A DNA stretch of 64,000 nt. It comes from Klebsormidium nitens. Its lineage: Eukaryota > Plantae > Klebsormidiophyceae. The translations under genes and the position numbers were made by a program. Location of the stretch: assembly GCA_000708835.1 (NCBI GenBank), contig DF237156.1:42686-106685 (forward strand), written 5' to 3'. The notes under the pieces are model-generated. The model was not told the origin of the DNA, did not search any database, and saw only the letters and a list, made by a program, of their open reading frames with translations. Each line of letters starts with the position of its first letter. Position 1 is the first letter of the stretch. Below are positions 18,641 to 40,507 of the stretch, one piece after another.

Positions 18641-21600
18641 CTATGGTGTAACCGGCTGAGCCGGAGTCAGCACGGCTGACCCCCCCGGCCCGCGCTTGCT
18701 CTTTTTGCTGGAGCGCTTCGACGACGATTTTGAGATGCGGGCCCATCGTCTGCGGACCATCCTTTTGGCCATTGGCCAGCCCTCCACTTTCAGGAATACG
18801 AAAACGTCGACAGACCTGCGTGGGACAGAATAGTATACTGTCAAGGCGCTACGAAATATGGGTCGCTCTTATCATGATCCTTCCCAGCAACCAATCCAAG
18901 TTGCGCACCGTCAGCGGGACGGCTTAGACTTCAAAACGCAGCAGGAAGGTTCACGGAAAGCGTGTATTCGGGCGGATAAAACATGAAGGAATGGCTCACG
19001 AGAGGAAGACGTACTTCGGCAAATTTGGGGGCGCCCGCAGCGCGATCGTGACTATTCCCACCACTCGATTTACGTAGCACACGTTTGGACGTTCAAGACA
19101 TCAAATCAAGAATGAGGTTTGATAAATGACCAGAAGTACAAGCGAGTGAAACAGGGGGGACTGGCTTACAAGAGGAGTGTGAAGGCAAAAATGGGCAGCG
19201 CCTACAGTGCGATCATGAGGTGTCCAAGCGCGCGATTCAGACCGACGAATCTGGGGCGGCGATGATTCTTAATCCAATTGAATTTTTACTTGTCACTTGT
19301 AATAAGATTGTCATGCATATTAACCAGGGAAAGGCAACTCACGAGAGGAAGTTGATGGCGAAAATTGGCAGCGCCTGCAGCACAATCATGAGCGATCCCA
19401 AGAACGCGGTTGGGGCCGCGGACCATATTTTTTGGACAATACAGACTTGAAGAAATACATGAAACATCCGAGAAGAAGTATTCGACCGGCCAAATAAAAC
19501 ATGGAGAAATTACTCACGACAGGAAGATGATGGCGAAGACGGGCAGCGCCTGGAGCGCGATCATGACGATCCCGAGCGCGCGTTATCCCAGCGCGCAAAA
19601 TCTGGGACAAATATAAAAACAAAAAAAGATAAAAGTTTTTCGGCCGATTGAAACATAGAATCACTCACGATAGGAAGATGATGGCGAAAATGGGCAGCGC
19701 CTGCAGCGCGATCATTACGATCCCGAGCGCGCGGTTGGGGCCGCGGACGCCCGAAGCCGCCATCGCGAGGAGCGCGATCGCGATGGACGCGGACGCGACG
19801 TCGGACACCGCGTTGATCAGCTCGCACAGCTGGGGGCCCGCCTCCTGGAACGGCTGCGCGCAGTTGAAAAGTGACGTCAGCAAGACTTCAGCAGGTTCCG
19901 ATGACAATCAGCAAGGAATTGTGATGTCATTGAGGAGGGCGTAAAAGAAGCGACCTTCGCACGCCCTGTTGATCAGCTCGCACAGCTGGGGGCCCGCCTC
20001 CTGGAACGGCTGCGCGGACAAAACAGAAAGCTGTGACGTCAGCATGACGTCAAAGAGTCGCTTGAAGAGCAAGTTCTGTGTGGGTTTGATCCCAGCCAGA
20101 AGCGTGTGAAGGAAGGACGTTGCAGAACGTATTGATCAGCTCGCACAGCTGAAGGCCGGCCTCTTGGAACGGCTGCGCGGGTGATCTACAATCTTTGCCA
20201 GCATGGCGATGTCAGCAGTAGCGATGTCAGCAGTGACGATGGAAAATGTGGGAAAGACTATTGGGCACCACCACCAACGGTGGCATCAGCATCTCCGGCG
20301 CGAGTGGATGATTCAGTAAATGATGCGGACGCGAGGTCGCGAACTGCGCGGCTCACCATGAAGAAGAGGATGAAGACTGCGAGCAGCGCCTTGAGGATGA
20401 AGATGATCGACAGTTGCGTCCAACTGCCCTCGTCGTTGGGGAAAGACGCCAGCACCACGCCCTCGACGCCCTGAAAGAACAACAATGCCTCTTCTAAGTA
20501 GACTTTGGTCAGATAAAAAAGAAGCTGGGCCACTTTGCATTTTATTTGGTTAGCACCGCAGCCAAACCAGAAGCAGTCCTTTGCAGGTGGCGATTGGGTT
20601 GAGATCAAGAACGAAAGCTGCAACTTCACTAAATCTTTGGATTGGAAGCGGAGGCAACCCATCAAGGCCTCCGTCGTGGCGGGCTTTGATTGTGAACGTA
20701 TACTCACGTTGCAGATTTATAATATTCAGAACAGAGTCCTATCCAAACGGGCATGATTGGTTGGTGACGGACTTGAAAGCTGGCTATCGTTCACAAAATG
20801 CAGCTAAGGCACTCCGCGAGACGGCCCTAAGGAGCCGAAAAAGAAGTACTTACGTAGAAGAAGAGCTGGAGCGTGAAGTAGTACGGCCGCAGGAAGCCCC
20901 CATACTCCTGCTTGAACTCCTGCACTTTGGCGGAGCCCCTGCTCAGGTTACGCGAGACCGCGTGCGCGACGCCGGGCCGTTTCGGGTTAGCGACCAGTCG
21001 CGGGCTCGGGTTTGGGCTGCCCCAAAGGAGGTTTGAAAACGGGTTTGGCTCCGCTGGTGCCGCAGTTTGTACTGCGCCCGGCGCAGGATTCGCTGCCGGG
21101 TTTGATCTCGGGTTTGCTGTGGAGTGTGCAACCGGTTCCGTTTCTGGGTTTGTCAAACCTTGTGCGGGCGTATCTGCGGGTTCGATCTCGTGGATTGGGC
21201 TCGTCCCTTCGTAACGCCGGCCTGGCGAGGCAGACCCAGGGTGACGCTTTTCCGACGGCATCGAAGTCGCTCTTTTCAGGGCGGAATGAATCGGTGGCCG
21301 CAAGGGGGATCCCCTTCCTGGGCTGTACCTATCACCGGTCAAAAAGTCCACCGGGCGCTCCAACCGGGGCCTTTCCAGCGCCGCTGAGGAGTCGGGGGAA
21401 ATCGACACGCTCCTTGCGAGTGGGGGCTTCGACGGGCCCGGCAGAGCCCGGGGGGATCCCCCTGGGGAGTTGAGGGCCTCCCACGTGGGCGCCACGTGTG
21501 ACGGGAGCTGCGTTTGTGCCGCAAGCGACGCTTGCTGTTTTCGGTACACGCTACTTCGTCGCCGGCTCCGACTTTTCGTCAGCACCGGTCCCCCCCCTCC

Positions 21601-24600
21601 TCCGCCCTGCTCATCGGCCCCCCCGGCCGCAACATGCGGGCTGACGTCACCATCCGACCCCACGTCGACGTCAGCGGGCGGCGCGGCCGCTGCCGCAGCG
21701 CGCGCAAGCTCGCCCGCGTCGACAGACGCCCTCCGGCCCGCGCCGCTGACGTCACCCGCCCCGGCGCTGACGTCACCCGGACCAGCTGCGGTCAACAGTG
21801 CGCCTCCATCGGACGCGCGCCGAGAGAGCGTACTGCGCGCGCCACCGACGTCAGCGGTCACGCTCCGGCGCATGGACGGCACGTAACTAGGGTGGCGGCT
21901 GAGTGTGGCGTCGCCGATCCGCTCCATTGGCGTTCCAATGAGGTCGTCGAAGAAAACGCCGTAGCGGGCTGTGAAAGGGGTACTAAGATTGTTTATAGGC
22001 AAAGGTGTCCTTCGGGGCCTAGATCATTTAAAAGGCGAATAGTAAGACCCGCTGAGCAGGTTGCGCGGTCGTTTGTCCAGATCATTGGAACTACCGTAGG
22101 ACTCTTTGAACCGCACATACTGATCCATTGAAGCGCAGGAATCCTCAAGCTCAATGATAACCTTCTGAAAGCGACGAGAGTGTGTGCGAGAAGCGTGGTA
22201 ACTTTCTCCTCAAAGTCTAAGGTCCTGAAAGCTTAAAAAGGTTGAAATTTTTACAAACGTACCTGTAAAGAAGCGGTGGCGCTGGGTATGAACAGGCTCC
22301 CACTCGCCCTGCGCGTGCCCGGAGAGTGCGCGGTCACACCACTTGGCGACCGCGCGCAGGCCGCGCGTGGACGTGTTCTGCGCGCGCACCTGGCCGCCCA
22401 TGCCATCGTCCATCTCCTTCACCACGAAGGCGACCGTCTTGTTCTGCACAACAGCCAGATGGTCGCCGTAAGCGGCTGTTCAAGGAAGCAACCGTTCGAG
22501 AATCTGCCCGATATGAAATGCGAGAGACCACTAGAAGGTCACGCGTCGTTTATTTTGGGTCCCGAAGGGCTTGCAACGAGAGAGACACTCACATTTGCGA
22601 TTGAAAATAATGCGGAGTTGCAAAGTGACGCAGGACTGAGATCGAAGAGTAGCACCGACCAAATTGCACAGCCTTGAATGATGGACGGACTCAGTTGATC
22701 AAAGCAAGCGTTCGAATTCGAAGCAGAGTCCGATACCTTTGCGTGCAAGCCCCACTGTTCTTTGTTCCGAATCAGCGACAGAAATCTACAGAACAAGAAG
22801 CGAGGACTTTCAACAAAGATTGAGTAGATTTGTAAGAATGCCTTACCGACACAACGTGATAGTAGACGTAAAGGATTGCCCAGATGATGTAGAAAACCAC
22901 AAGCGCCAAAACGACGCCTCCGAGGACTTTACCGAGACGGGTGCCTCCTGCAAGGCGGAGGGATTGGGATTGATTGGTACTTTCTCCTTCGTTTATATTG
23001 CTACTGTGGATCGTGAAAGTCTCAGCATGCCACACAGTGAGGCAAGACAGCATGAATGAGACTGATCCGTGTCAATGACAGCAAATCCAGAACCTTCTGG
23101 CTTCTGAAATAGCTCGAAAAGGGAGACTAATCAGAGCCTGGCAAAAAGCACATGCGCCTTGGGCCAGAAGTCGATCGTAGTGGCCGCTTTTGCGTAAGAA
23201 AGATGACCAAGAGAGAAAGCTCCTCAGAAAGGGGAGACTGTAGGGCAAAATAAGAAACTTTGGGGAATATGTACGTAAAAGAACGCGCAGAGATCAGGCA
23301 GAGACCTTTTCCAAAGCGCAAACCTCCTTCTTCAAAAACGAAAGCCATTCCGATTTCCGTGTCTACTTCGAAGCAAACTCACGAGACCATCTCGGTCGGC
23401 CGAGAAAACTGAAAGAACTAGAGGCGCGGCACTCACCCATGATAACGCCGATGCTGGCGGTAACGAGCCCGATCACTGCCGCGTTGACAAGGATGAACTC
23501 GAGCGCCGGGAAAACTAGGATGTCGGGAACGTTCTTGAACTTTCGCATCAGGGGACCGGTGAGGACCCGGATAAAGAGCATCACCAGGAGGAGAGCGGCT
23601 ATCCAGAACAGGGCGCAGAGGAACGTTTGGAGCCTGCAGGCAAGTGTCGGAAGATTGGTAAGTGGGCTGGAAAGCGCGTTTGAGTCGCGCGGTTTCGGTT
23701 AAAGTGTTGAGTTTGCAGAGTGGACACTTTATGAATGTGTATTGGGACGCCATTTAACATGTTTTGGGGTCAGAAATTTGTCGGGACCCTTTCTCGAAAA
23801 GGATAATTGTTTTCGAGCAAAGCGGTTTGCTGAATGAGGAACATTTCTAAGATCGACTGACGGTAACGCGAATCTAGCGAACCGGAGAAGATTGGCCCCC
23901 CGTCTGGGGCTTAAATCCAGTTGATTCAGTGCGCGACCACTAATTTTTTGAGTGCTTTCAAGAGCCGAAAAGTGTTCGAACAAAAGCGCGCGCTTATTGT
24001 ATTGCACAAGCTAGAAGACACGCGCGGTCAAATAAGGAGCGCCGGACTTCGGAGAGTACATACCCTTCATTTGCGGTATCCGGCAGATTCCCCTGTAAGA
24101 AATTGGAGACCGCTTTCCCGTCCGTCAGCAGCGTCTGGTACAGACTCTCCATCAGTTCCGTCGACGTGGCGTTTCCCCCAACGTTACTCGCGACGACCGT
24201 AACGCTAGTACTCTCGTTCGTCGGCAGGCGCGCGGGGACAGTCCTCGCCGCGAACTGGGGGGCATCGTCCCCGGCCAAATTCCAACCCCCCTGAAGGAGC
24301 GCCCGCCGGTGGGGGGCGGATTCTCCAGCGGAAAGCTCCCCCCGGGCCTGGTAGCTCCGCACCCGCTCGAGCCTTTTCACACTCTCGCCGAAGCCTTTCC
24401 CGCAGAGCGCGCGCGCGGCTAAAGAATCGGCGCCCATGAGCCGGCGCCCCTTGGTGTTAATACTCCCCTGGAACAGCTCGGCGCTGGTTACACCCCCCGA
24501 CGGCCCGGCCGGCGTTCCGTTGGTCTGGTTCGCCAGAAACGGAGAATCCGGGGTTTCGCCGGAATCGGTGAAGTCAATCGCACTGAAGGGGCAAGTCCAG

Positions 24601-27600
24601 TGGAAAAGCGAAAAGGAGACGGCTTGCGTTGCGTCGACGTAGACCGGGGGAAGGGGCGTCGCGAGGTTCTCGCTGGCGGCCCAGGCGGCCATGTTGGAAA
24701 AGGCGCCCTGCGGAGGGGGGCGGGTTAGTGGTTCGAAAACCTGGGGGCGAGTAGAGACTTGGCAGCCCCAGAAAACGGAAGTAATTGTGAACGGTTGACC
24801 ATCAATCTCTTGCCCTAGTGGGTATTCTAGGCACGTAATCTAGTCAGGCCTATCAAAGATGCAAGAACTGTTTGCCGCGCTGCTCTTAGAGAATACAGGC
24901 CGGCCTTCGACGGCCCTTGTTGACCCGCTGCGTTACCTTAACCCGCGTCGAGCGTCTAGTGAAAAGTCGATTTTGCTCTCCGTCCGGTTCAAAAGCTGGA
25001 ACACACTGACTGTACTTACTCAGTATACTATAAAGCTCAACATGTCGGCACCTTCGACGCAATCCTGTTATTTTCCAAGCTTTCTTTGGCCGACCCAATC
25101 GTTTCCGCTAAAGACGACCGTTATCATTTGGATCAGCCTTTTCTTCAGATTAGCAGGCTTGGTCATAATAAAATTCTGCGGAGACTACAGAGCAGTACGA
25201 TGTTATTGATTACATATGCTTACCCCAAAGGCAAACGGCCCCGCAAACGTGGCTGCGACTCCCGACACCACGAGCGCGGTCGCGGCGGTTACTTGCACCG
25301 TGCGGGTTACCGCGGGGTCGACCTCGTCTGCGCAGCAAACCAAAACCAGGTTTGAGGGCAGTTTAAAAAGAAACCGATCTCAAATCCCAACATCTCGTCA
25401 CGATTTAAATTGTAGCTTTGATCCCAATGGCTTCGAATTCGCCGCATTTGAAACGAGGCGCTTCTGATCTGGCTCTCATTAATAAGATACGGTCTGGCTT
25501 CGTTCTACAGCCTCCGCCGAAATTCCAAAGCAATCGCTGCCGGCTTATATCCTCTTTTGCTGAAACACCGCAGGTCTACTAACGGGTTAGCAAGAACCTA
25601 GAACGTGAGTTCTGACGCCCTCGGCAGAGACAAAACCCATCCAAAAGCTGGAGCACAAAAGTAGCAATCAATGTCCCACAAGATTGCCAACGAGGCAGCA
25701 CGAGAGGGCTACTCACAGTTGAGAACCTGGAACTCGTTGGAGGGCAGGTTTGGGTGTCCCGCGTAATCGGCCGACACGTTCTCGGGGATCTGAACGATGA
25801 GGGTTTGGGAGGGGACGATGGCGCAGTCCAGCAGGTAAAGCTGGCCGTTGGTGTAAGAGTCGTCCTTGGTGAAACTGTGCAAGAGATGGAGAACATGTTT
25901 TGCAAAAGTAATAAGCTTTGTTTAAGTTGAAATACTCACCCTAAGCTGTGAAAAGGTGATTGCAGTGAGCACTGAAGATGCAGTACAAAAGGCAGAACTG
26001 CCTATCGATGTTAGGAATCATTCTGGACGAAGCTGCGTAAAGAGTGGGACAAACTTTCCTTTTCGTGACATGTTTCTCGTGAGATTCATTCCAACGATGG
26101 ATTCGAAACGACCTCAAGAGTCTCATTGTGGAGCACGTCTTTGCCGCGTCCAATCGCCTGAGAACGCCGCTTTCGCACTCCCTTAAATTCGGCCCGTCCG
26201 CTTCATTCCAGAGACAGACGGTTCCAATCTGTTATCTGATTGTCGCCACAAGCTGGCAAGTGCGGCTGACGCCCTCCTTCCGGCGTCCTCTTTGACCTAG
26301 TATACACTTGTCCAGCCAGAACTCACAACATCCACTCTGAGACCATGAAACGTACAAACTTACCCTATGAGCGTGCCGTTTCTGACGTCAGCTCCGGACG
26401 GTCCGAAACCCGTCACGGGCTGTCCGAAGTCCACCAGCAGCGTCACGTTGACGTCAGTGCTGAGACCCGGACGCCCGCTGTCGGCCCTCGTAATCTTTGG
26501 GGTCGGACGTCCGGAATCTGCAAAAGGAAACGGAAGTTGGATGAACCTTCGACGCGAGGCCAAAAGTTGGGGGAAGGCCACTGAGAAGCATAAGAAAGTC
26601 CTCACTACGCAAATAAGTCCTTTTCTCTCTTGTTACGTACGTTTCCCGTACTAGATTACGACCCAGATATATTTTCACGGAACCTACTCCGCGTTGCCAT
26701 GCAAACACTGTCGGGTCTTCGCAAGCGGACGTCGGGGCAGCAAGATTAAACTGAGGATAGGTTTGGAACAGAGCTTTTCGGATTCACGGGCTCCAATGTA
26801 AACCATCAATCTGCAAAGCTCAAAGAAATCTCAGCTAGTGTTCTTTATGAAGAGCGTTTGCGCAGAGTTTCTTTGGGGGTACGCGCTGATCAGTGTAGCA
26901 AAGAGTAGCTCCAAACTTGTCTTTTCCATGCTTATCAAAGTTCACCGTAATATGCTGTGAATGACGAGTCCGCCGTAAGGTTGACTGGGTTGCCCGCCCG
27001 GTCCCTGAAGCCGCCCGGCTTGGCGGCGACCGTCATCAAACTGGGGCCCGTTCCCTCCGGAACGACCTGCGAAATGGCGGAATAGCGGATAAGTCCCTAT
27101 AGCTCTTGTTACTGGGCAAAAGTGTCTGCAATACCAAGAATGAGGTTATCCTACACAAAAAAAAACTGGCGCGCCTCTGGCCTACTGCAACTCGCGATCA
27201 ATATCCACTTGCAGCTTTTGACTTTTAAGATTATGACCACGACGACACTGGGTTGTTGGAAAGCGTCGCTTTAGCTTCAAATACTTTGACGACAAAGTTT
27301 GGTTAGCTATTGTTACCTTCGCTCTCCGGTTCAAAAAATGATTGCAGATAAACGTAGTGGGTCAACTGAGGCAAACGTAGCGGCTAACGTTCCCTCCTTG
27401 AAGACTATTCCAGGCAAAGCAGAAAGTCCCGTGCCCATGCACGGACTCTAACCCACCTGAAAACGATACCCGGTAGGCCCATCCCCGGTTATCGTCCCCC
27501 AGGTTTGCAATAACCGCCTTCGCGCCTGGGTCGTCAACTGCTGGTCAAACCTCAGGTTCTGAAGGGATCCCCCGCTGAGCTGGAACGCGCTGGACTCCAA

Positions 27601-30600
27601 CTGGGGGCAGGGTTCGCTGATTACGAGATACCCCGGGCACGGTTCGGGCACGTCCCAAACCAGGAAGGTTGTGCTAACCCCGTTCAGGGTTTGCTGGCTG
27701 ATCCGGGTTGTGCCGACTTCCAGGGCGACCACCACGACTGGAGGAACAGGGTCTGCAAAAGAGGTTAAGGACAGGGTTAGCGGAAGCTGCTACCGTCGTA
27801 AAAGGGAAATTTTGCGATCATTAAAGCGAACATTAACGCCTGGCGAGGACGTTCTAGTCACAGCGGATTGCAAACATTCGGCCTCGCAGGGACGAGAGAC
27901 TAAAAACCTTGTAAGACTACAAAAACTGCTGCGACAAACCTCCTTTTCTCACTGATACCCTCAACCAGAACAGTGCTAAGAACAGAGATCAAGAGCCACT
28001 CCAATAACAGCGAAAAGGCCGCTTCAGGAAGAACGCCTGTGACAAAAGCTCGACATATGGGCTCGACAACATGAACACTGGCGAACAGTGACAAACGCCT
28101 CAAGTTCTTCTAAGATGGCTTCTTTAAAAAGCTCTTCGAAGCTTCTCCAGACATCGCTCACCGACTGTGAAAAGTACGCTTCGAGAAGCGACGAGGGAAC
28201 CAAACCCGTCCGTGGTCTGGATCGTGAGCCGGTGGCCACCGACCGAGAGGCCCTCTAACTGGAGCTGCCCCTCTCCCGCGCCGCAGGGAACGGGGGCGTT
28301 GTCGTCCAACTGCAGCGAAAACAGGGCCTTTATTGAACCACTCAAGGTCAACAAAAGCATTCGATGTAAATCCTTGAAAAGAGCGGAGGTCTTGCGAGTA
28401 GTGGGTAGGAGTGCAAGCAGGAAGAGTGCGGCACTTAAAAGCAACGAAGGTCCGCGAATAGTGACAAATGGACTCGGAAAGGCGCCCAGAAAACAGGGAA
28501 TGGCTGTCTGAGGCAAAGCCTCGCCTGCTCTCTGAAAGCAGAAGCTGTGGCCGTCGCGAGATGCAGATCATCCAAATTCCTTAGGGTACGTTCGAGACCA
28601 TAGTAATAAACCTCAGCTTCGATGAACTGCTTGTAGGCTGAGGCTTTTTTTACTCCTGTACATCAGTGATCATGCATTATTGGGGTGCGCTGGCAACATG
28701 ATTTGCAATCGTCCAAAGCGCTTCTAAGCAACCCACGCTGAAGGAAAGATGCCTCTGCATCAAACACCACAAAGCTACCTTACGCGCAAGCAGAAGAGAC
28801 CTCACCTGGCAGGTAGAGACGCAGGGCGTGTTCACACAAGCGGCCGCGCTCCCGCCCGTCAGCTGGAAGGCCAACCTCCACTGGTTGGTGTTAATGAACT
28901 CGCCGATCGGGGGGTTTAACACCATGGTTCCCAGGTCCGCAGGCGCCGCGATTGTGTACGCAGGAGTGGTGTCAAGCGTCCGGGGGAGTGACGTCATCAT
29001 CTGCTGGACTGTCCGTACCATCTGGGAGTCCGGAGCGGGGTTGATGATCTGCCCGGTTGACAGCTGGATGACGTTACTTGAGGTGTTAAGTGGCACGGTG
29101 ACGGCAGAGGGGACGGTACCCGGGGGGTTCGTACCGGGCACTGTGGTGGGCAGGGGTGAGGTCGGGATGGAAGGGACCGGGGCGGGCGAAAGGACCGGGA
29201 TTGGAGTACCTGTAGACGAGAGGAACATGGATTCCATTAGGAAAACAAGCGAGGAATACTTCAGAAGAGCAGGACGGCTAGTGACCTTCGACCTCGATAA
29301 AAAGAAACGACTGAGTTGGAAGCCAAGACTCTCGAGTAAGATTGGAGTATCTGAAAGAAAAAGGAAAACGGGACCTGATGCACAAGGGGCTGACGAGAGG
29401 TTGGAAGACGAGATCCGGCTTGAGCCGAACCCAGTGGTGTGGGTCAATAAGTCCAAAGCTGCCACGCAGTCCGATCGCTTGTTAGTCTGTGAGACCAGGG
29501 ACGTCCGCTCGGGAATGTGCGCAATTCTAGACTTTTCTTGAGAGGATAAAAAGTTGGATCTCATGTAAGCCCAGCCAAAGCCAGGCGACTCCTTTCGAGA
29601 CCGACGCGACGCTTAACTAGTAGACGGAAGAGGACCCGAAGTCAGGAGGCGACAGAGGAATATTCAATCACGCTTCTTCGTACTTGCAGTTTTCGCAGCC
29701 GTCTCTGAGCGCATCTGGGCCGAGCCCACCTCTTTCATCATTACAGCGAAGAACTTAACTTCTCTTTATCGTTACATCGAAGAACAGAACTTTAAAACAA
29801 GACGATGCGCACACAGGCTAAAACACGACCAGTTCAGATTCCGTCAAATGCTTGCCTGTCTGCGCCAGAACAGCAGCCGGGGAAACGGTCGCGCCCGGTT
29901 GCGTCTGCTGCGGTGCAGGGAAGCTCTGCCCGGGGGGGGCAACCGGGGCGTTCGTCGACCCCCCCGGCACTGCCAAAGTCGGGCTCGGACTTTCGATTGC
30001 AAAGTCTGGCGCGGGCGTGGTTTGGGCGGCGGTTACCGTTGACCCTACAGAAGGTGCGGCGGAGCGAATTAGTGCGGCGGGCGGAGTGACTGACGGGGTG
30101 GTTAGTAGCGGGTTAGTGACTGTGGTTGACAGCGTTGGTCTGGGTAATGGAGGGTTAGCGAAACCCGTTTGGAAAAAGGGCAGTGGTGACCCGATGGGTA
30201 GTTGGTTGAAGCTCAACGTGACGACTGGGACGGGCGAAGGAATCAGTGGAGGATTAGCAGAAGTGGTTAGCGGCGAATTAGTAGGAGCGGTCAGTGAAGT
30301 ATCCGTAGAAGCGGGCAAAGCTAAAGTGCTTTCAGTTGGTGTCAGTATTGGGAGACCGGTGAAGGTCGTTTGGACTAATTTGGGTAGTGATGACCCTGGT
30401 GGGTTCTCAGTAGATAAAGTGGGTTTGGTTTGGGCAGTCGACAGCGTTGACGCAACTGGAGTTTGTGTGGGGTTAGAGACACTGCTTAATATTCGTAATG
30501 ACACCCAACCGGCGTAGTCGTAGAAATTGCTGGAGGCCCGGTAGAACCAACCGGGAAGACGGTGACCGAGTTAGGAGCAATCGGGTTAGTACCTTGCGGA

Positions 30601-33600
30601 GCGGGGGTTCCAGCCGGGGTTAAAGTCGGGGTTACTGGCGCAGTTGTCGGGCCGAAAGGGACACTGGTTAACGTGCTGGGGGCAGCCGTTGAGCCCATTG
30701 GGGAAAGGGTCGGCGAACCCGGGGTTAGAGTTGGGGAACCCGGGGCTGATGTCGGCGATCCTGGAGCATTGGTGGGTGCGAAAGTTGGGGGACCCGGGGC
30801 ACCGACTGGTGTGCCCGGCGTTAGGGTTGGCAAACCTGGGGTTAGGGTAGGTAACCCTGGGGCTAGCGTCGGCAAACCCGGGGTTCGGGTCGGCGAACCC
30901 GGACCAGCGGTAGAACTCCCCGAGGATGACGTCGGGATGACCGGGAGGGGAGTCGAGCCGACAGGGGAGGTTGGACTCGGGGTAGCGGTTGGTCCGGTTG
31001 GAGCAGAGGTTGGAACTGCTGGAGCACCGGTAGTACGGACCGGGGAAGGAGTCGTGCCAACCGGGGCTGGAGACGTGGCAACCGGGGGGAGAGTGGAACC
31101 GCCCGGAGCAGGGGTGGTACCAACCGGGGCAGGGGTGGTACCAATCGGCGAAGGGGTTACGGGTGGTAGAGTAGAACCACCCGGGGCAGGGGTGGTTCCA
31201 ACCGGAGCAGGGGTGGTACCCACCGGGGGAGAGCTCGGGTCAACCGGGGCAGGGGTCGTGCTAATCGGGGCAGGAGTTGTGCTAACCGGGGCCGGTGTGG
31301 TGCTAACCGGGGCCGAGGTTGTGCTAACCGGGGCAGGGCTGGTGCTAACCGGGGCAGGGGTGGTGCTAACCGGGACGGCCGTCGTGGGGACCGGGGTCGG
31401 GGTAACAGGATCCGGGGCAGGTGTGGTAGGAAACGGGGTCGGGGTAACAGGAACCGGGGCCGGTGTGGTAGGGACCGGGGCAGCAGTCGTTGCGACCGGG
31501 GCAGGGGTGGGAGGTCCAGGCGTGATACCGTAAGCCACGTCCTGCAAAAGAGAGCCCGGAAAACGGATTCTACCAGCGTGGAACAATGCTTTGGAATTCA
31601 TTGTGGCGAGCCTTGATCTGATGATAATAAGGAATGGATCGTCTCGCAAGGAGAAACGTCTCGCAAGGACAAAGGTCATTACAATGCGATGGCGACTGGT
31701 CTGAACGGGCGAGCAGATAAGAAAGGCTTCCAGAGCTGATCCTCCCGTACAAAAACAACTTTTCGTAAGCCCCAGATGGGTCAAATCGCGCCGGTGCAAA
31801 CAATAAGAATCGCACCGTTCGAGGGTTACGCTGCTGTAATCTTGAACAAGATTGTCCGGGCTTGGAACGCTCGTAGTCGACAGCTTTCTTCTCGGTCCTC
31901 TTACACCTTTCACCACAGAGGCGCGCGATTTAAGCGACCTTTCAGCAGAGGCGCCAGCCAAGAAGTCGCCGGACTCTCACCTGCTGCTGCCCAGGTGCAG
32001 CCGTGTTGCCCTCGTAGATACTGCCCGGGTCGTTATAAGTACCGCCGGCAATAAAGGCCGCCCCTCCGGCGCCACTCACCTGCATAGATGGTTTTGCCAG
32101 GATTACGTTGTGGGGTCTAAGGGATTCCAAAAACTCGAAATTCAGGACTTTAGATTTCAGCGTTAGGGATCACAGGTTTTGAGTCTCAGCTAAACTAGCG
32201 TTTCGAGGGTTTCAGTAAACTCAGTTACTGTGACCGCTGGACTAGCGCGTCGCATCAGCTCGGTTCGTCAGATTGCCAGCAGAGAATCCCAATCGGACGC
32301 TCACTAACAAACTTTATCATATCACGAGTCTTTTGAGAGCAGGGCTTTCCGAGTCTCTTGGCCATCCTGACTCGCACGGCTATCTCTCTTCTCTGGCTTT
32401 GCTAAACCCCTGATTTCACGAAGTTATTTCAGAACGGAAATCGACACTGGGACCAATGTACTCAGCCCTCTTCGAAAACGCCCTCTTCTTCTTTTTCGTT
32501 TTTGCTCCGAAGGCGGAAGAGCGTCTCTGGGCTGGCTTCTTCGGACTGTTCATGAAAGGCCCTCGCAGTGTGCCAAGTGATTCCCACACCTCTGAGAGTA
32601 GTATGCGTCGACTTGACACTCCAAAAAGCGTCAATCTGAGGAAGCTTCCGAATGGGACCGCAACAATGCGTCCAAACCAGCCTTTGATACTGTGTCCGAA
32701 CAGACTCTGACACACCGTTTGGACAATTTGGATACAACGACTGAACGGAGAATCAGCAAACCCGCGCCCAAGCTGGGTGTATATATTGTTGATGTTAGGT
32801 GCTTAGTCAGATCAGCGTCCCGGCAACACTTACCGCTGAGTTCGAGACGAAGCTGCAACTGATGCAGTTCGTGATTCCGCTGGATTGGTAGAGGGCGCCC
32901 CCGCTCTGCAAGTTAAGAAACGGAAACGGATCGTCAGTGATCCCCAACACGTCTCGTCGTTGTGCGAGACTCTTAGAAACAGCCAACATAAGGAGAACGA
33001 TGACGTGAAGCTAAAATCGATTGAAAGGAGAAAATTTTCTGCCCATTCAAAGGCGCGCCGTTTGACCAACAGTTTGTCTTTAAGCCGGGTGTCGGAAAAA
33101 GCCTTTGAAAGTTTTGCAAAATGAGGGACTAGGAATGGTCGTGGATTGGCGAACGGAAGGTCCCTCCTTTTGAGAGGACAAAGAAGGGTGGTGACCAGAC
33201 AAAAGAGGAATATTAGGGTGACGAAATTGGAGAGATCTCGATACTAGTCACCGTATCTTCCTCCTGGACTCAATCGTGTCGATAGGTTCTCCCTTCCTAG
33301 TGGCTTCCAAGTCGTCACCTCGTCATGGTTGTCAACATCGCGTCGATCCGTCTCAACGCGATGACAGCTCGCGCGGAAAGCGGAGCACCGACAGAAAACG
33401 GAGCGCCAGCGGAAAGGGAAACAGTCGCAGGCGTTACTTCTTTTCGTTCTGCTTCGACCCCGCAAGCGAGCTGCTAACCAACTAACAAACCCCGAGGAAG
33501 AAAGGAGACCCCACGGACCGAGCGAGCTGGGTTGAGCTTTACCTGGTCTGCCGTGTTGTACTGGAAGTAGCAGTTGGTGCAGTTGAAGGTCCCGCCGTCG

Positions 33601-36600
33601 TTGTAAACGGCTCCGCCGTTCTGCGCACAATTGCAAAAGTATGAGATTTTATTTCTTTGACGGCAAAGACATTTGAAATTCTTGCAAAGTAGAGAATCAA
33701 GGTTTTGGGTCGGCAGGGTTCACCAGAATAGATAAGCGAAGTGCATCAAAGCGAAGGAGCGGCTCTAAGGAAGAAAAGGCGATTCGAGAGAAGGCAGCAT
33801 TCGACGCTCGACGGTGGTTATTTCTGTTGATTGAACGCTTGCCAAAATCCAATTGCACGATAAGAGTCGATGCTGCGTCTGACCCACAGGCCCGAATATT
33901 CTTCGATTCGCTTCTGACACACTCACCACTGCCTCTTGATAGAACCAGATTCTCTGCCGCCCCAAGACCTTCTTTCCCGCAGACCCTTTTCCCGCAGAGT
34001 TCTTTCCCGCAGACTCCAGATAATTCAGATGTGGATTAGCACGACACTGGGCTCAAGTCTTAGAGTAGAACAGCTAGAAGATGTCGAAACAGTGTCAAAA
34101 GCGGGACTTACAGTAGCGCTCCCCGAATCGAACTGCAGATTGGTGCCGTTGAAGGTCCCCCCCGGAGAGATATACAGCAAACCCTGCGAAATGCGAGGGG
34201 AATAGCTGATATGCGCCGCAAGAAGCCTCTTCAATCGAAATGGCAGCTCTCTTTACACCCGCAGAAGAAACTTCAGGTGCAGGCATCGTTCAATCAAATC
34301 AGGATCGCGCCCTAGAAGGGCCACAAAATCAGCAAAAAGCAAGCAAAAAGCAGCAAAAGATACGGGGGATTTGTGATATCAAGTAAAGATTGAGGAGACC
34401 CGAAGGAAAAGAAAGCCAAGGAAAAGAAAGCCCACCCCGTTTGTGCCCTGATACCCGTTCCCTGCTAACGTCATGTCCTGCGCCGACACCGTCATCCCAG
34501 GGCCCACTACAAAGAGAGGCCCTGACGTCACTTGCAACAGCCTCCTGCTCGGTATCTGTGGCGGACTGCCAGCACCGAAAGAGTCTCCCCCAACCGGGGG
34601 GGGTAGTGACGGGGAGCTCTGGATCCCCCCCGAAGGTGTGGCAGTCGGAGGGGGGGACGTTGGAGTGGGTGTGGGGGTGTCAGAAGGGGGTGGGTTCAGA
34701 GGGGTTTGCGGGAGGAGGGAAGAATTTGCCGGGGTTTGGACGGGGGGAGGTGAAGAACTTTCAGACGTTTCTGAAGGTGGGGGTAGTAAGGGAGCTTGAG
34801 TAGTCTCTACAGGTGGGGGCGTGGCCGTAAGCGAAGTTGGGGTCGGGGGGGCGAGAATATTGGAGATGCCGTCCCAGGGGGGGGATGGGCAGCGTTTCCG
34901 GGGGGCTGTTCGTGGAGACTTCGTCTGCCAGGGGGGGAGAAATGTACGTTGGCGGGGGAGGATACGGCGCAGTTTCGAGAATAGGGGGGGGTGCTGAAAG
35001 CGCAGGGGGTGGAAGTTGCAAATCCTTGGAAGGGAGGGGGGACGCAAGCAGCGGCGAGGGCGCGACGAAAGGGGGGGGTGGCGCGGAGCCTTCTATCACG
35101 ATCGTCGAGCCCCACCCCAGGAAGGTGACCGTCCGCGCGAGCGGCGGAAGGGGCGCGGAAAGTACGTAAGTCCCCAGGGCCATGTACACCTCACAAGACC
35201 CGGAAGCGGCGCAGAATATGAGCGAAGTGACGTCAGCCACCTCGCAAATGTCGTCACAGGCGGGGAGCGGAAATGTGGGGGCGGGGGTGGGGGAGGGGGG
35301 AGTGGGACGAATTGCTGGGGGTGGGAAAGCGGGAGCGATCGCCGGAGGGGGAAAGGCGGGGAAAGGGGGTGGTAACGATGGCACGGCGGGTGGGGGAGGG
35401 TTACCTAGGGGTGGAAACGGAATGCGAGATGATGTGGTGAAAGTGAGGAAGAGACGACAGCAAGTGGAGGAGAAGACCTATCGTAAAATGTTGAGCATCG
35501 CAGTGCGGGCACTCAGGAAGCAGCGAAGAACAACAAGAAGGAAAACTCAGCATCGGATCTCAGCAAGAAAATCAGCAAAGGAATGGGCACATGTTTGAAA
35601 ACCCTCGGCGAGCATTTACCTCGTTCTTTTTTGAGACAGACTGGTTCACGACTCGTGAGCAGCAAAAAAGTGCACGGAAAAAGCGAGAATACGGTATTAG
35701 CAGCTGAAAGAACTCACTTTCTGCCGGTATTGGCGGTGGGCTCGAGAGCGGGGGGGGCACCAACACCGGGGGAGGAAACGGCACGCTCGATGGGGGGGGA
35801 GGTAAATTTGGAGGTGGTGACGAAAGAGTTGGGGGGGGCGCTAGGGGGGGGGGCTGAGTTGGAGGCGGATTGAGGAGGAGAGGGGGTGGGTTCACCGAAG
35901 TTGGGGGCGCAAGAACCGGAGGGGGGGGGATACTTTCGGGGGCGGAAAAGTTGAGGGGGGGGCTGATTTGGAGGCGGATTGAGAGGGACGGCGGGGGGGT
36001 TCGCCGGAGGGGGGTGGGCAAGAACCGGAGGAGGAGGTGATACTTGGGGGGGTGGAAAACTGGCAGGAGGTGGTAGTGAGCTGAGAGGGGGCGGAGGGGA
36101 AATGAGGGGCGGCGGGGGGGATCGGAGCGGAGGGGGGGGAGCCACTCGTGGTGGGGGGAACTGGGGAAGGGGGGGGGCGCAGGATCTGCGCGGAGAAAAG
36201 AAGAGGCTCAAAAAGAGAGGAGGGAGACTCGAAAAAGGTGCATGCGCGTGCAAGAACAAAACGAGCAGGCAAAGCTTCTGCAAGAAAGAAAAGCTCTAAC
36301 GATTCCGCTGGCTGACCTGGCAGAGCATTGTGGATCAGTCCGGCTAACTGACATTGGACAAGAGCCCTCTTTCTTTGAGGAATCAAACAAGGGAACATCA
36401 AACAAGCCCAAATACGTCAACATCAGACACGTGAAGATAGCCCTACATAAGTGGTTGTTTTTCCGAACAGAAACGCTTGCGATATTTGCCGAGAACTGGA
36501 AACTCACACAAATCGCTTTCCGTCGCCGCCACGTAATCAATCACCGCCCCGTACGCGCTCGAGGTCGCGTCCTCCTCATAGAACACCAGCGTCGTCTCGT

Positions 36601-39600
36601 TGCTGACGGCAGCAAACGTCAGCCGCTGGAGCGTATACAACATGTTCGTGGTGGTCCGCGCGGGGTCGAACGGAACCGGAAAGTACTGAGCGGATCCCCC
36701 GGTCAGGTTTCCGACGTCAACTACCAGCGTCTTGACGTCCGTGCTAGAGCTCTCGGGGTTTCGGCTGAGGGCGAAGGAAAGGTCGTAGAGGGCCCCCGGA
36801 GTAGTGACGAAACTCTGGCGCAGGAAGAAAATGGGTTAGAAAATCTGGTTAGAACCTGGTAAGATGCACCCTCATTGAGGGCCTCGGGGCCCCCGAAGCT
36901 GTGTTGGAATTGCGTCGCAAGAAGAAACGAGTCAGCTGATCCGGTTAGAAATTGGTTCTTTGCTCCTACAACAAGCGCACACGTGCAGGCACACGTGTCT
37001 ACCAAGTTCAAGTAACCAACGGCACGCGGCCAGGCTTCTGTGCATAGAAAACTTGCGGACCAGTCAGAAGTTAGTGGGTTGACAAACATCAGCAGAAAGT
37101 GACCCGCCTATGACATTAAGAACCCAACATGAAGACCGAAATGTGCAGAGTGGTTGCTATAAGTTTCAATGCCGAAGCGGGTATCCCAATGACTCACTTG
37201 CGATATCGCTCCAGGGGTTTGGCCAGCCATGTCAATAGAGCGCTCTCCCGAATACGCCTCTGCAAATGGGTGCGAGGTGAAATTGTTAAAAATCCCTACC
37301 TGATCCGCCTTTATATATAGTCCAGCTTCGTACTTGATGCAATGCTCACAGAAGAGACACGTTGTTAGAGGCAACTGACGGCCTCTGGACACAAGCTGAT
37401 ATTGATTTAAAATGCCCGACTGCGGTGTCAGGAGACGTTCATTTGTTTCTCACACTTAGCTTGTTTCCTGCGCTCCTCAGTGCCGTCTTTGACACTGACC
37501 TTTCGTTTTTTTTGCAAACCAAGAGCCCTTTTTTCCGACTGCCGCTCGACAGCAAGCGGAAAATCATAACAAACACTCGTTCCTTGCAATCAGTACCAGC
37601 TCCCACGGTCTTGCGCAAAAGAGACGCCCCTTACCGCCACAATCTGCGCGGAACGGACCCGGAACGAACCGGAACGAATCGGAACGAAACCGAGGGTTCT
37701 GGAATCACCCCGTAAGTGTACCAAGTCACTAAATGCTCTCATGAGCGGAACGGACGAACGGAACGGAACGGAACGGAACCGAGAGTTTTGTACTCACCCC
37801 AGTAAGTGTAACGGTTCACTTCGATGCTCCCAAGGTCAGTCCCGGCGTATTGACTCCGGCTCGGGATAACATCCCAGTTTGCCAGCCAATATCCGGTAAG
37901 GTTTCTGGGATCGACTCTGTAGAACCTCTCTTCAGTGAAGGGGGTTCCTTCCTCAAAGTCCGGGTTGAGGAGAAGGTTCCCGGTAACCGGGGGCACTGAG
38001 AAAGTCGGGTAAGCGTGGGTTAGCGGTTAGCAGTTGGAAGAGATGGTCATCATGCAGTGGTCAGGAATTTTGCGAATTAAAGGAATCGTGCAAAGAATGG
38101 TTTTGCTCACGCAGCAAACTCGACGTGCAAATGGGCTACGAGAACGTACTAGGGACTCAGACATCCTTCCAGTCTGATAGTAGGCCTTTTCAAACAGCTC
38201 CTTCTATGAAGACTCCGGAGGTACAATTCAGTGTGAAACGTTCGAGAAAGTGAGAAATAGAGATTCAAGGAACATCGCACAGACTTTCCTCCAGTTAAGC
38301 TGCATCTAGTTTTACGCATGGATCTCTGCTCCACTGAGACGCCAGCTTTTGAAAGGCTCCTCTTAACACCAGAATGCATCTTCAACGCTCCAGCTCCATT
38401 GAAATAGTTTTGAATGCGAAAAAGCTGCTTCCAGCACTTGTCTCTTTGAACCAAGATTGCCAACAAGCAACAGGCCCGGCGAAAATAGCATCGAGTTTGA
38501 CGGTGGCTTACGTGAAGTTGGAGGAGGTGCTGCAAAAACGCCATATTAAGACCAATGTCAGAGATCCGTTGTTCTAAGATGCTTCCATACTCAATTCTAA
38601 GGGTCTGTACTTTGACGGGAGGAGCCGACCGGAAAACTCAAGACCCGAACCTGACGCGCCAGTTCAGACCCATACATCCATAAAACGTGTTGTCGACCTT
38701 TGACCTGTAAGAAACGGATTCTCAACACTCTGATTGAAGTGTCAGGAACTAAGTGCAGGGTTTGCGAAAGCAGCCGCGCCGCGTCAGGCAATCTACTCCG
38801 CTCCATTTATATATGGATCGTCAATCGTCAACCGTCAACAATAAAGCCCTTCAGCAACGCAACCTGTAAACGCTCACCGCTGACGAACGTCACGATCGCG
38901 CCATCGATGACGCAACCATAACCGTCCGCGGCCGTGTTCCCGCCCTCCGCAAACAGCAGCGTCGTCACCGTTCCGTTCGCCGTGAACGGAACGGTCTGAA
39001 CGGAATACTGCATGTCGGCTCTGGTCGGGCTCCCGTCGTTCGCGCTAACCGAAAACTCGACCTCGGCGTCGCCTACGGATACCTCCAACCAGCGTAGGCT
39101 TTGGTCGTTAGCAAAGTTGTCGGGGTTTCGCGCGAGCGCAAACTGGAGCTGGTACGTAGCCCTCGGCGCCGTTGAGAAACTCTGCGAGGGGCGCACGTCG
39201 AGCTTCCGTTTTTTTAGGATTGTGAGTTTGGAAGTTTTGAGCTCTGGGGAAACCGGGTACGTCCATCTCAAGTGAAGATTTTGAAGAACCTACAGAGCTG
39301 AACTTCCGACACTGAATGCCAGAAGCTTTGCAAAATGTTGGGCGTTTCTCAAACCACTATCCAGGTGTGCAAGGAGGTGAGTACTTTCAAGATCAGCTGC
39401 AATTTGAGTTCTGCTATTCAGGGCGCACGACAGGAAACTTACTTTCTCAGATTTCAAATTTTCAGCGATGGCTAATCAAACGTCCGGACTCTCAAATGTT
39501 GCAAGCTTCAAGCACCGCTATTCGCTTCGTTCGAATGAGTGTTGAGCCATATACGCGCACGCGAAAGCATCGGTCAGAGTATGGCCCTCGAACCCTCGAA

Positions 39601-40507
39601 ATGATAGAGCATTAAGTGACGAATCGAGTAACGGTTCGGGGGTGCGACTCACCTGGCGCATCGCCCCCCCTGATGTTCCTGCCATGTCGATCGAACGGTT
39701 GCCCGAGAACGGCTCTGCGAAAAGGTGCACACAAGAGGTGAGCAACTTTGACGATATCTGATTAGTCGTGGTAACCCTCGAAAGCCCCAGCTTTGGCCGG
39801 ACTATTTCGCCAAGGGCAGCGGAATCGTAGCAGACAAAATTCCCCTGAATCTGTGGAAACTGGGCGGCGGGACTGTGCAGAAATCGGAACGGGGGGACGT
39901 GGGCAGCTAGCTGACGTGTCCCTTCCGGCGACCAGTCGTCTGAGACTGCTCCTCTTTGGTTGCTCAGCGGTTATGCAACTTAATCCACATTCCGGGGGCG
40001 TTCGGAATGGATGCTTCAAGATTCTTGCCGCAAGCAACGTGAAGCAGATGCTCTCTGTCGATCAAGCGAAAGCGTCTGAGCAGACAAGAAGAGACGCGCT
40101 GATATATAAAAGCAAAAGATAGTGCCGTGAGCATGCACTCGGTCTAACAAGAGAATCTCATCGTGCTTCCAGATTTGTAAGATCACAGCAAATGCAAACT
40201 CACGCCATTGGAAGTTTCCGTCGACCTCGATGTTCCCCCCGCTGGGGGTTCCGTCTGGGTTATACGGGTTATAGATAATCTCCCAGCCGGTTAAGTACGC
40301 CCCAGTCGAGTTCCTCGGGTCGATTGTGACAAACGTGTCGCTTGTCGAAGAAGCGTCCTCGAAATCGCCGTTAACCAACAGGTTATCGCCGCTTGGGCTC
40401 GGCGAAAAGGGTGGGTAAGGCTGGGCGGACACATTCACACTGATCCAGCCCAGCAGGAGGAGCACAATGGCCAGCGGCCAGTGTGAAAAGGCTCTGGGTC
40501 GCGCCAT
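18641..40507 (-). CDS. Giant mosaic cell-surface/membrane protein (~2,900 aa, ~29 exons): signal peptide, 2x DUF642-like, Pro-rich, beta-helix-like repeats, Pro/Thr-rich stalk, Ig-like repeats, TRP-like multi-TM domain
   Basis: Exons: 40204-40507, 39653-39714, 38878-39181, 37798-37995, 37198-37259, 36508-36814, 35718-36185, 34436-35404, 34112-34183, 33543-33620, 32834-32905, 31981-32079, ~30500-31541, 29856-~30480, 28806-29209, 28162-28309, 27457-27752, 26946-27066, 26364-26517, 25717-25874, 25224-25327, 24064-24707, 23437-23633, 22847-22947, 22263-22443, 20854-21968, 20357-20470, 19669-19853, 18641-18815. Splice phases agree at the junctions traced. Frame breaks fall in poly-C runs (34.8-36.2 kb) and at ~30500. 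The only signal peptide is at 40507 (MARPRAFSHWPLAIVLLLLGWISVNVSAQ). Confidence 0.75.
18985..19669 (-). repeat. Four fossil copies of the 3' end plus donor of exon 19669-19853
   Basis: Copies of ...ATCGCGCT(G/C)CAGGCGCTGCCC..TTCGCCATCATCTTCCT.TC|GTGAG near 19510-19585, 19337-19422, 19165-19260 and 18990-19060. Spacing is ~150-190 bp and divergence increases with distance from the exon. Confidence 0.85.
19960..20185 (-). repeat. Two fossil copies of the acceptor plus 5' end of exon 19669-19853
   Basis: GCGCAG|CCGTTCCA(G/A)GAGGC.GGC..CAGCTGTGCGAGCTGATCAA is repeated at ~19968-20016 and ~20133-20180, in addition to the real copy starting at 19853. Confidence 0.85.
25717..28309 (-). other. Bacterial-Ig-like repeats (Big-type)
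   Basis: Motifs LSVGGHRLTIQTTDGFG...FTVDPVPPVV, FRDRAGNP, LLVDFGQPVTGF and ADYAGHPN resemble the DxAGN / F.EPVTGF / TVDTxPP signatures of Big domains (recalled family pattern, not searched). Confidence 0.55.
29856..31541 (-). repeat. Coding Pro/Thr/Ser-rich low-complexity stalk (PTTPAPV-, PVGTTPA-, PTLTPG-type short repeats)
   Basis: Direct translation of the minus-strand ORFs 30486-31961 and 29818-30504. Confidence 0.85.
31981..34183 (-). other. Parallel beta-helix (pectin-lyase-fold / POMP-type GGA[I/L/V]Y) repeats, about one per small exon
   Basis: GLLYISPGGTFNGTNLQFDS, NGGAVYNDGGTFNCTNCYFQYNTA, SGGALYQSSGITNCISCSFVSNSA and GGAAFIAGGTYNDPGSIYEGNTA, each on a phase-0 exon of 72-99 nt. Confidence 0.7.
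36508..40507 (-). other. Two tandem DUF642 / galactose-binding-like domains (exons 1-6 of the giant gene)
   Basis: NLLVNGDFE...GWEI...RSIDMAGTSGGAMRQSFST...LARNP...YGCVID and NLLLNPDFE...NWDV...RSIDMAGQTPGAISQSFVT...LSRNP...YGAVID. Both copies share intron positions, with a 62-nt middle exon in each. Confidence 0.8.

Follow-up and report, generated by a model that had tools for sequence, protein, structure and literature searches.

A transcribed and spliced gene of Klebsormidium nitens, located on the minus strand of the window (the whole 64,000-nucleotide stretch of DNA analysed here), encodes a surface protein of about 2,700 residues. The gene model runs from an ATG at 40507 to a TAG stop at 18643-18641 and comprises 30 phase-consistent exons encoding 2,672 aa. 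In the reading that we moderately favour, this single gene of ~30 exons (40507-18641) yields a secretory-pathway or cell-surface glycoprotein of a stalked multipass family, whose head consists of a DUF642 pair and a short beta-helix of pectate-lyase type with a Pro-rich linker between them. Judged by sequence comparison, the gene is a member of a Klebsormidium 'stalked multipass' family in which a constant body carries variable, carbohydrate-directed heads, and what is new here is the DUF642 and beta-helix head on this lineage-specific body. All elements listed in a preliminary description of this DNA were recovered on the minus strand between the same limits, 40507 and 18641, and a single phase-consistent model was again obtained. 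The proposed length of ~2,900 aa was revised downward, mainly because RNA contigs show that 30592-30045 is spliced out as an intron.

RNA-derived contigs from four runs in three studies, with minus-strand GT-AG or GC-AG junctions, demonstrated splicing between about 34.5 and 27.6 kb. The introns removed are 33542-32906 and 32833-32080 in the beta-helix part and 31980-31542, 30592-30045 and 29855-29210 in the stalk part, the last with GC-AG borders; RNA junctions also support the first three exons of the Cys-containing and Ig-like modules (29209-28806, 28309-28162 and 27752-27457). The contigs overlap as one chain from above 32908 to below 27600, with a loose end that matches 33546-33575. Continuity of one transcript across 30486, which had been set beforehand as a test, was established by spliced contigs that link the beta-helix, stalk and Ig-like exons. 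Two RNA contigs extend another 1,691 and 1,896 nt downstream and, if spliced as modelled, would reach the exons of helices 1-3. For the DUF642 link and the exon joins downstream of the RNA-covered part, we infer the structure from sequence, phase and conservation.

The deeper contigs lack the intron at 30592-30045 and some others retain it; with the intron retained, the frame ends at a stop codon, 30488-30486, that is present in the sequence. Unspliced contigs from three of the four runs lie over its donor (30253-30621), over its acceptor (30031-30188) and inside it (30138-30575 and 30387-30574), and they could reflect an additional soluble product consisting of the secreted head and stalk without the membrane part. 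We consider such a product quite improbable, given that word depth is lower for the unspliced than for the spliced contigs (contig depth being a poor measure), that the former may be pre-mRNA, and that the frame of this intron is open in the ortholog too.

Conservation supports the body of the model. Two related algal contigs keep every exon from 34555 to 18641, in order; alignment to L001/L004 included 100% of exon bases versus 23% of intron bases, alignment to L002/L003 included 49% versus 3%, and L003 and L004 both conserve the beta-helix exons. In a local blastp search with the model, four K. nitens proteins were colinear with the body over 490-1,140 aa (31-35% identity, E 1e-70 to 1e-102). 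These paralogs, KFL_007310020 (GAQ91125.1), KFL_003150070, KFL_000930340 and KFL_007240025, share the colinear stalk, Cys module and Ig-like modules, the juxtamembrane R-x-L-L motif, and the seven helices with their long loop, while the family motifs WEPV...(R/K)YG.F and MIALQ.L occur both in them and in the window gene. The architecture of head, stalk, Ig-like and multipass parts is real, with body exons conserved in related contigs. The heads of the paralogs differ: a GT71 mannosyltransferase in P0010, none but a signal peptide in P0011, or a head lost at a scaffold end, and within 10 kb upstream of the four paralogs no DUF642 or beta-helix exons were found. The gene and its paralogs point to a modular family in which one stalk-and-membrane body carries different wall-directed heads, either a mannosyltransferase or the lectin-like pair plus beta-helix. 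The product was absent from the protein collections searched, and the sole real relative longer than 250 aa that matched the juxtamembrane exon was a paralog, so this gene may be missing or broken in the public annotation.

The N-terminus is a typical signal peptide, as had been claimed (residues 1-28, 40507-40424, ending in NVSA before QP; hydrophobic core WPLAIVLLLLGWISV), which follows the ATG at 40507 and whose best hydrophobic 10-mer scores 2.89. Two DUF642 (choice-of-anchor-C) beta-sandwich domains follow, at 40423-38878 (exons 40507-40204, 39714-39653 and 39181-38878) and at 37995-36508 (exons 37995-37798, 37259-37198 and 36814-36508), each split over three exons with identical phases and joined by canonical, in-phase GT-AG sites. 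PF04862 matched exon 3 of both domains at 31.3 and 29.6 bits, above the Pfam cut-off of 27, which confirms the DUF642-like pair of the preliminary description. With TIGR04362, domain 1 scored 54.2 bits in exon 3 and 19 bits in exon 1, and domain 2 scored 55.4 bits (E 1e-14 for the matches at 54-55 bits), the whole-protein cut-off of this model, 120 bits, being out of reach for single exons, as scanned here. In both copies, exon 1 covers profile positions 1-34, exon 3 covers positions 69-155, and the middle exon of 20 aa bears a G.RSIDMAG motif, so that the three exons together span the whole profile of ~157 positions. Two tandem domains behind a signal peptide are likewise found in seed-plant DUF642 proteins and bacterial TIGR04362 domains, and the bacterial TIGR04362 model scores the K. 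nitens pair higher than Pfam's plant-based PF04862. In contrast to the seed-plant proteins, the domains here most likely sit at the far end of a very large membrane protein. The DUF642 family has been described as exclusive to spermatophytes (PMC6651502), despite which DUF642-type domains are present here in a streptophyte alga.

Between the DUF642 pair and the beta-helix lies the expected extensin-like linker (36185-35268; 32% Pro), which would be made up of exon 36185-35718 and the first part of exon 35404-34767. Its exact borders are uncertain, and no frame can be assigned within the Pro-rich part, where all three are open. DUF642 domain 2 can be joined to the beta-helix in phase by way of canonical sites: GTGAGT donors at 36507 and 35717 pair with AG acceptors at 36186 and 35405. 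A further donor, at 34766, is weak (GTCTGA). The parts downstream of the pair are plainly extracellular, with 18 N-glycosylation sequons, the stalk and the beta-helix. On this basis, the DUF642 pair is probably carried on the same transcript as the body. The region could alternatively hold two genes, one running from 40507 to a stop at 36446 and encoding a secreted wall protein with the DUF642 tandem, the other for a membrane protein starting downstream and comprising the Pro-rich, beta-helix, stalk and Ig-like parts and the seven helices. A signal peptide with two DUF642 domains is the complete, standard stand-alone layout in plants (PMC6651502), and unspliced read-through past 36508 meets the stop at 36446, 21 codons after domain 2, whereas the strong GTGAGT donors match their AG acceptors in phase. 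In paralog P0011 a signal peptide of its own directly precedes the stalk, but 36600-34400 contains no ATG with a signal-peptide-like core (best real candidate 1.7 versus 2.89 at 40507). Both orthologous contigs end short of the DUF642 region, and the stretch compared with RNA, 34.6-27.6 kb, lies downstream of the join between DUF642 domains and body; within the family, however, the same body bears other heads, such as the GT71 domain of P0010. Taking these points together, we regard two genes as rather unlikely and continue with the single-gene model.

The putative right-handed beta-helix begins with an N-terminal cap (35267-35085; ACDDICEV...GTYVL...VTFLGWGSTIVIEG) that has 37-43% identity to a bacterial ORF carrying PF12708, a pectate-lyase-like family (27.8 bits), and PF13229. 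Its coils (34555-31981) are encoded by five small phase-0 exons (34555-34436, 34183-34112, 33620-33543, 32905-32834 and 32079-31981), each contributing one GGA..Y...G.T..C.F..N.A coil. The beta-helix-like repeats reported earlier are present; the only profile match, when coil exons were scanned singly, was a weak one to Chlam_PMP in one coil exon (E 0.054). The long Pro/Thr stalk, mucin-like in composition (28% Pro, 21% Thr), was recovered as well; it occupies 31541-29856 (exons 31541-30593 and 30044-29856) and continues into 29209-28806. The Cys-containing and Ig-like modules (29209-25224) consist of the three RNA-supported exons given above and of 27066-26946, 26517-26364, 25874-25717 and 25327-25224, all conserved in contigs L001 and L002. 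Big_12 (PF19078) matched exon 26517-26364 and the same place in paralogs P0008, P0011 and P0012 at 13-19 bits, below the cut-off of 27, which leaves the Ig-like repeats as candidates.

A conserved juxtamembrane module of 214 aa follows in one exon (24707-24064); its R-x-L motif (GRRLMG) is invariant, and RRALLQ is a second motif. A profile search with the module returned algal relatives only, and its AF2 model was too poor for use (pLDDT 35). The pattern R[RKH]x?L[LM] was seen four times versus 0.11 expected, a count reached in none of 5,000 shuffles; the paralogs carry it at three homologous positions, and its R and L are invariant across 11 sequences. The conserved R-R-L-L-Q motifs at module borders suggest putative subtilase (S1P-type) cleavage sites.

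The membrane domain contains seven hydrophobic helices, six strong and one moderate by hydropathy, and the secondary structure that AF2 gave for paralog P0008 likewise has seven. Helices 1-3 (23633-22847; exons 23633-23437 and 22947-22847; hydropathy 2.4-2.8) are conserved in L001, L002 and the paralogs. The predicted cytosolic loop (22443-20854; exons 22443-22263 and 21968-20854, the second ending in helix 4) carries a conserved NKTVAFV...WEPV...F.ARYGVFFDD motif, followed by ~350 aa rich in Ser, Ala, Gly and Arg; the join of 22847 to 22443 was settled because P0008 reads ...HVVMSKSVAFV... there. With 432 aa between helices 3 and 4 and 51 K+R versus 38 D+E, it agrees with the large basic, Ser-rich loop of the preliminary description. 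Helices 4-7 and a basic tail (20470-18641; exons 20470-20357, 19853-19669 and 18815-18641) complete the protein, the final 33 residues containing eight K+R and zero D/E. The AF2 model of the P0008 membrane domain was poor (pLDDT 50, pTM 0.32), an Atlas fold search gave TM values of 0.25 or less, and searches with the membrane domain against PDB and by word-based profiles gave no match.

In the working that we propose, the head would bind wall polysaccharide, and the O-glycosylated stalk would space it tens of nanometres off the plasma membrane. The membrane domain would anchor the head and may report on its state, with loop and tail in the cytosol, and a subtilase cutting at R-R-L-L-Q could free the head or stalk into the wall. 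The protein may serve in wall sensing or wall tethering. A tether-and-release reading would fit the mannosyltransferase-headed paralog and the border R-R-L-L-Q motif at least as well as the suggested wall-integrity or mechanosensor role.

The C-terminus had been described as a TRP-like multi-TM domain; its multi-TM nature held, whereas the TRP-like assignment stayed below cut-off. PF06011 matched none of the window exons, scanned singly at E up to 10; in the C-terminal halves of two paralogs it reached 13.1 bits (P0008) and 15.7 bits (P0012), against a gathering score of 28.5. There it was the top or only match, colinear with the profile end and covering the last four helices, and the automatic UniRef name of GAQ91125.1 is TRP-like. 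The TRP_N / ML-like lipid-binding domain had no match in any exon or paralog, and Ion_trans and PKD_channel had no Pfam match in window exons and paralogs. A canonical six-helix TRP/polycystin channel was ruled out by the seven helices, the last four joined by short links, and by the lack of a Pfam match. We rate homology of the membrane domain to the fungal TRP-like family PF06011, suggested by these paralog matches, at slightly under even, and ion flux through the domain as unlikely.

The membrane domain may instead be a lineage-specific seven-helix anchor or receptor, perhaps akin to the DGF-1/bodonin 'hat-TM' body, in which case no ions would pass and the protein would be an adhesin or a tether for enzyme and lectin parts. 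Language-model features of two paralogs ranked Euglenozoa clusters including DGF-1_C (0.91-0.92, 196-200 shared features) above TRP clusters (0.87-0.88), although by the tool's own figures a score of 0.9 is reached by chance in 4-10% of shuffled queries. In DGF-1, too, right-handed beta-helix modules are linked to a conserved membrane region at the C-terminus, which is reused with other heads (preprint 10.64898/2026.07.27.741050), but the profile of the DGF-1 C-terminal domain, PF11040, matched none of the paralog membrane domains at E up to 10, and PF06011 is the sole family that recurs in hmmscan. The seven helices lack a pore-loop signature, and a glycosyltransferase head on a paralog suits a tether better than a sensor. 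We treat this reading as tentative, its probability clearly below one half. Klebsormidium stands near the base of the lineage leading to land plants. A more far-reaching and very improbable proposal is that the family consists of wall-coupled TRP-like (Flc/Pkd2-type) Ca-permeable domains with gating set by interchangeable carbohydrate-directed heads, a wall integrity sensor lost or replaced in land plants, in which R-R-L-L-Q cleavage would serve as reset or release. If the body is a TRP-like channel, the protein would become a candidate for signalling from wall to calcium that can be tested directly; should the body be an anchor only, the protein would represent a new means of placing and releasing wall-active modules.

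Among known systems, polycystin-1 (animal PKD1) offers a conceptual likeness only: its huge ectodomain bears lectin-type and Ig-like repeats and is combined with a cleavage module next to the membrane and with a multi-pass domain; no homology to it was detected, and the K. nitens protein lacks GAIN/GPS, REJ and PLAT and has seven helices rather than eleven. The fungal PF06011 proteins (S. cerevisiae Flc1-3, S. pombe Pkd2 and A. nidulans TrpR), which act in wall integrity and Ca2+ balance (PMC8618638, PMC9600462), likewise have a signal peptide and then an N-terminal domain, lumenal or outside the cell, that is followed by a multi-pass domain, but their ectodomain has ~150 aa, compared with ~1,950 aa here together with a 430-aa loop and no match to TRP_N / ML-like. 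Trypanosoma cruzi DGF-1 and the bodonid 'hat-TM' proteins belong to an unrelated lineage and gave no profile match; DGF-1 differs in its seven 12-coil ribs and in having no stalk, DUF642 or Ig-like modules. They nevertheless resemble the K. nitens protein in combining a signal peptide, right-handed beta-helix modules, a conserved juxtamembrane domain and a C-terminal helix bundle, and their body, as here, is reused with other heads (10.64898/2026.07.27.741050).

The window has a eukaryotic, intron-rich composition of about 52% G+C, and the gene under study lies on its minus strand. The reading frame starts at ATG 40507 with a typical signal peptide, MARPRAFSHWPLAIVLLLLGWISVNVSA, followed by a cleavage point before QP, and the last exon ends in a TAG stop at 18643-18641; the gene limits of the preliminary description, 40507 and 18641, coincide with these two positions. 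Between them, 30 exons join without a stop into a hand-curated model of 2,672 codons, with exons chosen by RNA junctions, cross-species conservation, splice consensus and phase. An automatic splice-site and codon dynamic programme was set aside because a light intron penalty produced spurious mini-exons in the low-complexity parts, and a heavy one lost real exons of 62-78 nt. Database, family and fold searches were run exon by exon, and the joined model was used for phase, hydropathy, motif counts and local blastp against four paralogs. A small candidate exon at 22785-22737, between helix 3 and the following exon, was tried in two frames and rejected: it is not conserved in the related algal contig L002, and the K. 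nitens paralog P0008 reads ...HVVMSKSVAFV... there, which fits splicing from 22847 straight to 22443.

Splicing in the central part was read from RNA contigs of four runs in three studies, which match window 27600-33500 at 99% identity or more. These contigs skip six stretches, five of them bounded by CT..AC on the plus strand (GT..AG on the minus strand), corresponding to introns at 27753-28161, 28310-28805, 30045-30592, 31542-31980 and 32080-32833. The sixth, at 29210-29855, is a GC-AG intron with the donor GCAAGC, seen in contigs of three runs. A further minus-strand intron, 32906-33542, is indicated by loose contig ends past 32908 that match 33546-33575. One contig of 2,078 nt runs from 28821 to beyond 32908, and another of 2,782 nt runs from 30036 down past 27600 with 1,896 nt more. 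Taken together, the RNA contigs make up a single spliced chain in which the beta-helix coils lead through the stalk into the Ig-like part. Judged by length alone, the contigs that run past 27600, including one extending 1,691 nt beyond it, are likely to extend as far as the exons for helices 1-3. The preliminary description had proposed a single transcript across 30486, to be abandoned if transcripts ended near that position; because the spliced chain crosses it, no such early ending was seen for the main form. Intron 30045-30592 is retained in some lower-depth contigs of three runs, and its own frame is open and 54% conserved at the protein level in the related contig L001. Retention would carry the frame to a stop at 30488-30486 and is predicted to yield a secreted head-plus-stalk product; alternatively, the retaining contigs may represent pre-mRNA.

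A word-based search with the loop exon returned two genomic ORFs only, which served as orthologous loci: the contig pair L001/L004 (Logan), with about 80% amino-acid identity to the window gene, and the pair L002/L003 (JGI metagenome), with 45-78%. Every exon from 34555 to 18641 is present in the same order in both pairs. Of 5,676 exon bases, 100% aligned with L001/L004 and 49% with L002/L003, against 23% and 3% of intron bases, respectively. Both pairs end before the DUF642 region, so this conservation does not extend to the join of the DUF642 pair with the rest.

The head begins with two DUF642 domains, in each of which exon 3 scored above Pfam's cut-off. Each domain matches the bacterial choice-of-anchor-C model TIGR04362 more strongly (54-55 bits), with exon 1 accounting for the beginning of the profile, and the exon phases are common to both copies. 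After the pair comes a Pro-rich stretch that is open in all three frames, and then a cap-like beta-helix exon with 37-43% identity to a bacterial PF12708/PF13229 protein. The cap is followed by five phase-0 exons, each encoding one GGA..Y / C.F..N.A coil. The coil exons, within 31981-34555, measure 72-120 nt and are each in phase 0; with one coil per exon, duplicating or skipping an exon could change the number of coils while the frame stays intact.

Several observations bear on whether the DUF642 pair belongs to the same gene as this downstream part. The GTGAGT donors at 36507 and 35717 have AG acceptors in matching phase at 36186 and 35405, no start codon followed by a signal-peptide core was found from 36600 to 34400, and the sequence beyond the DUF642 pair is plainly extracellular. 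One gene is also favoured by a paralog in which the same body bears another head. The DUF642 pair could instead be a separate gene: tandem DUF642 domains commonly make up a stand-alone protein, and if the donor after domain 2 were unused, translation would stop 21 codons past that domain. A weak donor at 34766 also speaks against one gene, and the RNA contigs examined, at 27600-33500, lie downstream of the DUF642-to-beta-helix join. On balance, we regard it as reasonably probable that head and body form one gene. Neither DUF642 nor beta-helix exons were found when the paralog loci were scanned upstream, and a metagenome scan with the cap exon for a contig spanning DUF642 to beta-helix recovered only two bacterial-type loci. 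With the window gene, a family that already has a GT71-headed paralog gains a member whose head is of lectin type and includes a beta-helix. It also places DUF642-type domains in an alga, contrary to a review describing the DUF642 family as exclusive to spermatophytes (PMC6651502). A literature search for DUF642 together with Klebsormidium found no linking paper.

Within the body, Pro accounts for 28% and Thr for 21% of stalk exon 31541-30593. The Ig-like identity of the next part has sub-threshold Big_12 matches as its sole basis, at a homologous place in the window and three paralogs. The juxtamembrane exon (214 aa) is strongly conserved, and its profile, searched against 1.8 billion representatives, returned seven proteins: short algal ORFs, an unrelated repeat protein and GAQ91125.1. 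No public protein with the window gene's own juxtamembrane exon was found among these representatives, just orthologous ORFs on raw contigs and the paralog, and the window gene may be missing or broken in the K. nitens annotation. The paralogs were retrieved from Klebsormidium nitens assembly GCA_000708835.1. GAQ91125.1 (KFL_007310020), itself truncated by a scaffold end, and three more proteins are colinear with the model, membrane domain included, at 31-35% identity in local blastp; one paralog has a GT71 head by Pfam and shares the membrane domain. On scaffolds L006/L007 (DF237042.1, DF237673.1), an MS_channel_2nd mechanosensitive-channel gene adjoins paralog KFL_000930340 and a SPARK-domain receptor kinase gene adjoins paralog KFL_007240025; these neighbours may be coincidence.

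Hydropathy of the membrane domain indicated six strong helices and one moderate helix, with a 432-aa net-basic loop between helices 3 and 4 and a basic tail. AF2 secondary structure of a paralog membrane domain likewise contained seven long helices (model pLDDT 50; 35 for the juxtamembrane exon; both too low for use as fold models). The predicted topology places the N-terminus outside and the loop and tail inside. Directly before the juxtamembrane module, exon 25224-25327 codes for an Ala/Val/Gly segment of moderate hydrophobicity, VQVTAATALVVSGVAATFAGPFAF (score 1.66), which is shared by L001, L002 and the paralogs. Were this segment to cross the membrane, that module would have the opposite topology.

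The preliminary description had called this domain TRP-like. Neither the window exons, searched against Pfam membrane families at E up to 10, nor whole paralog membrane domains in a Pfam scan gave a match, and PF06011 membership was not obtained. For the C-terminal halves of paralog domains, PF06011 was the top or only match, with E-values of 0.007 and 0.04; these matches are colinear with the profile end and reach half the gathering score. UniRef automatically names GAQ91125.1 'TRP C-terminal domain-containing protein', which we take as a lead rather than as a test. By language-model features, two paralogs were nearest to Euglenozoa clusters including DGF-1_C (0.91-0.92), with PF06011 clusters next (0.87-0.88). 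A PDB sequence search with the membrane-domain profile gave no match, a word-based search with a profile of the paralog domains found nothing, and an Atlas fold search on the low-confidence paralog model returned meaningless rows. A distant relationship to PF06011 is possible, at somewhat short of an even chance, and a sensor-channel reading of the window gene is a minority possibility. According to a 2026 preprint (10.64898/2026.07.27.741050), DGF-1 carries beta-helix 'ribs' on a conserved 'hat-TM' body, which occurs with other heads as well; the parallel in design with the window gene is striking, but homology was not detected.

Four copies of R-[RKH]-x?-L-[LM], most of them R-R-L-L-Q, lie in the ectodomain, where 0.11 would be expected (0 of 5,000 shuffles reached four); R-R-(x)-L-L-Q is enriched about 40-fold over chance. 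The sites lie at model residues ~788, 1575, 1863 and 1909 (window ~34540, 27510, 24430 and 24290, minus strand). In paralogs P0008-P0012, the motif recurs at three homologous borders, after the head, within the Ig-like part and beside the membrane, and 11 aligned sequences share its R and L without exception. Plant pectin methylesterases have similar subtilase (S1P-type) processing motifs: in their pro-regions, RRLL, RKLL and RRML are Golgi cut sites of subtilisin-like proteases (PMC4008260). By analogy, the window protein may be cleaved at R-R-L-L-Q.

Near the 3′ end, within window 18985-20185, exon 19853-19669 (minus strand) has partial repeats of its two ends on either side. The 5′ end is repeated at ~20185-20117 and 20016-19954, and the 3′ end at ~19582-19517, 19413-19342, 19244-19161 and 19060-18995, all on the minus strand. 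The copy at 20172-20119 (54 nt) is in frame with an AG acceptor and a GT donor and could therefore be spliced in. Several such end copies are present in the close relative L001 and one in the distant L002.
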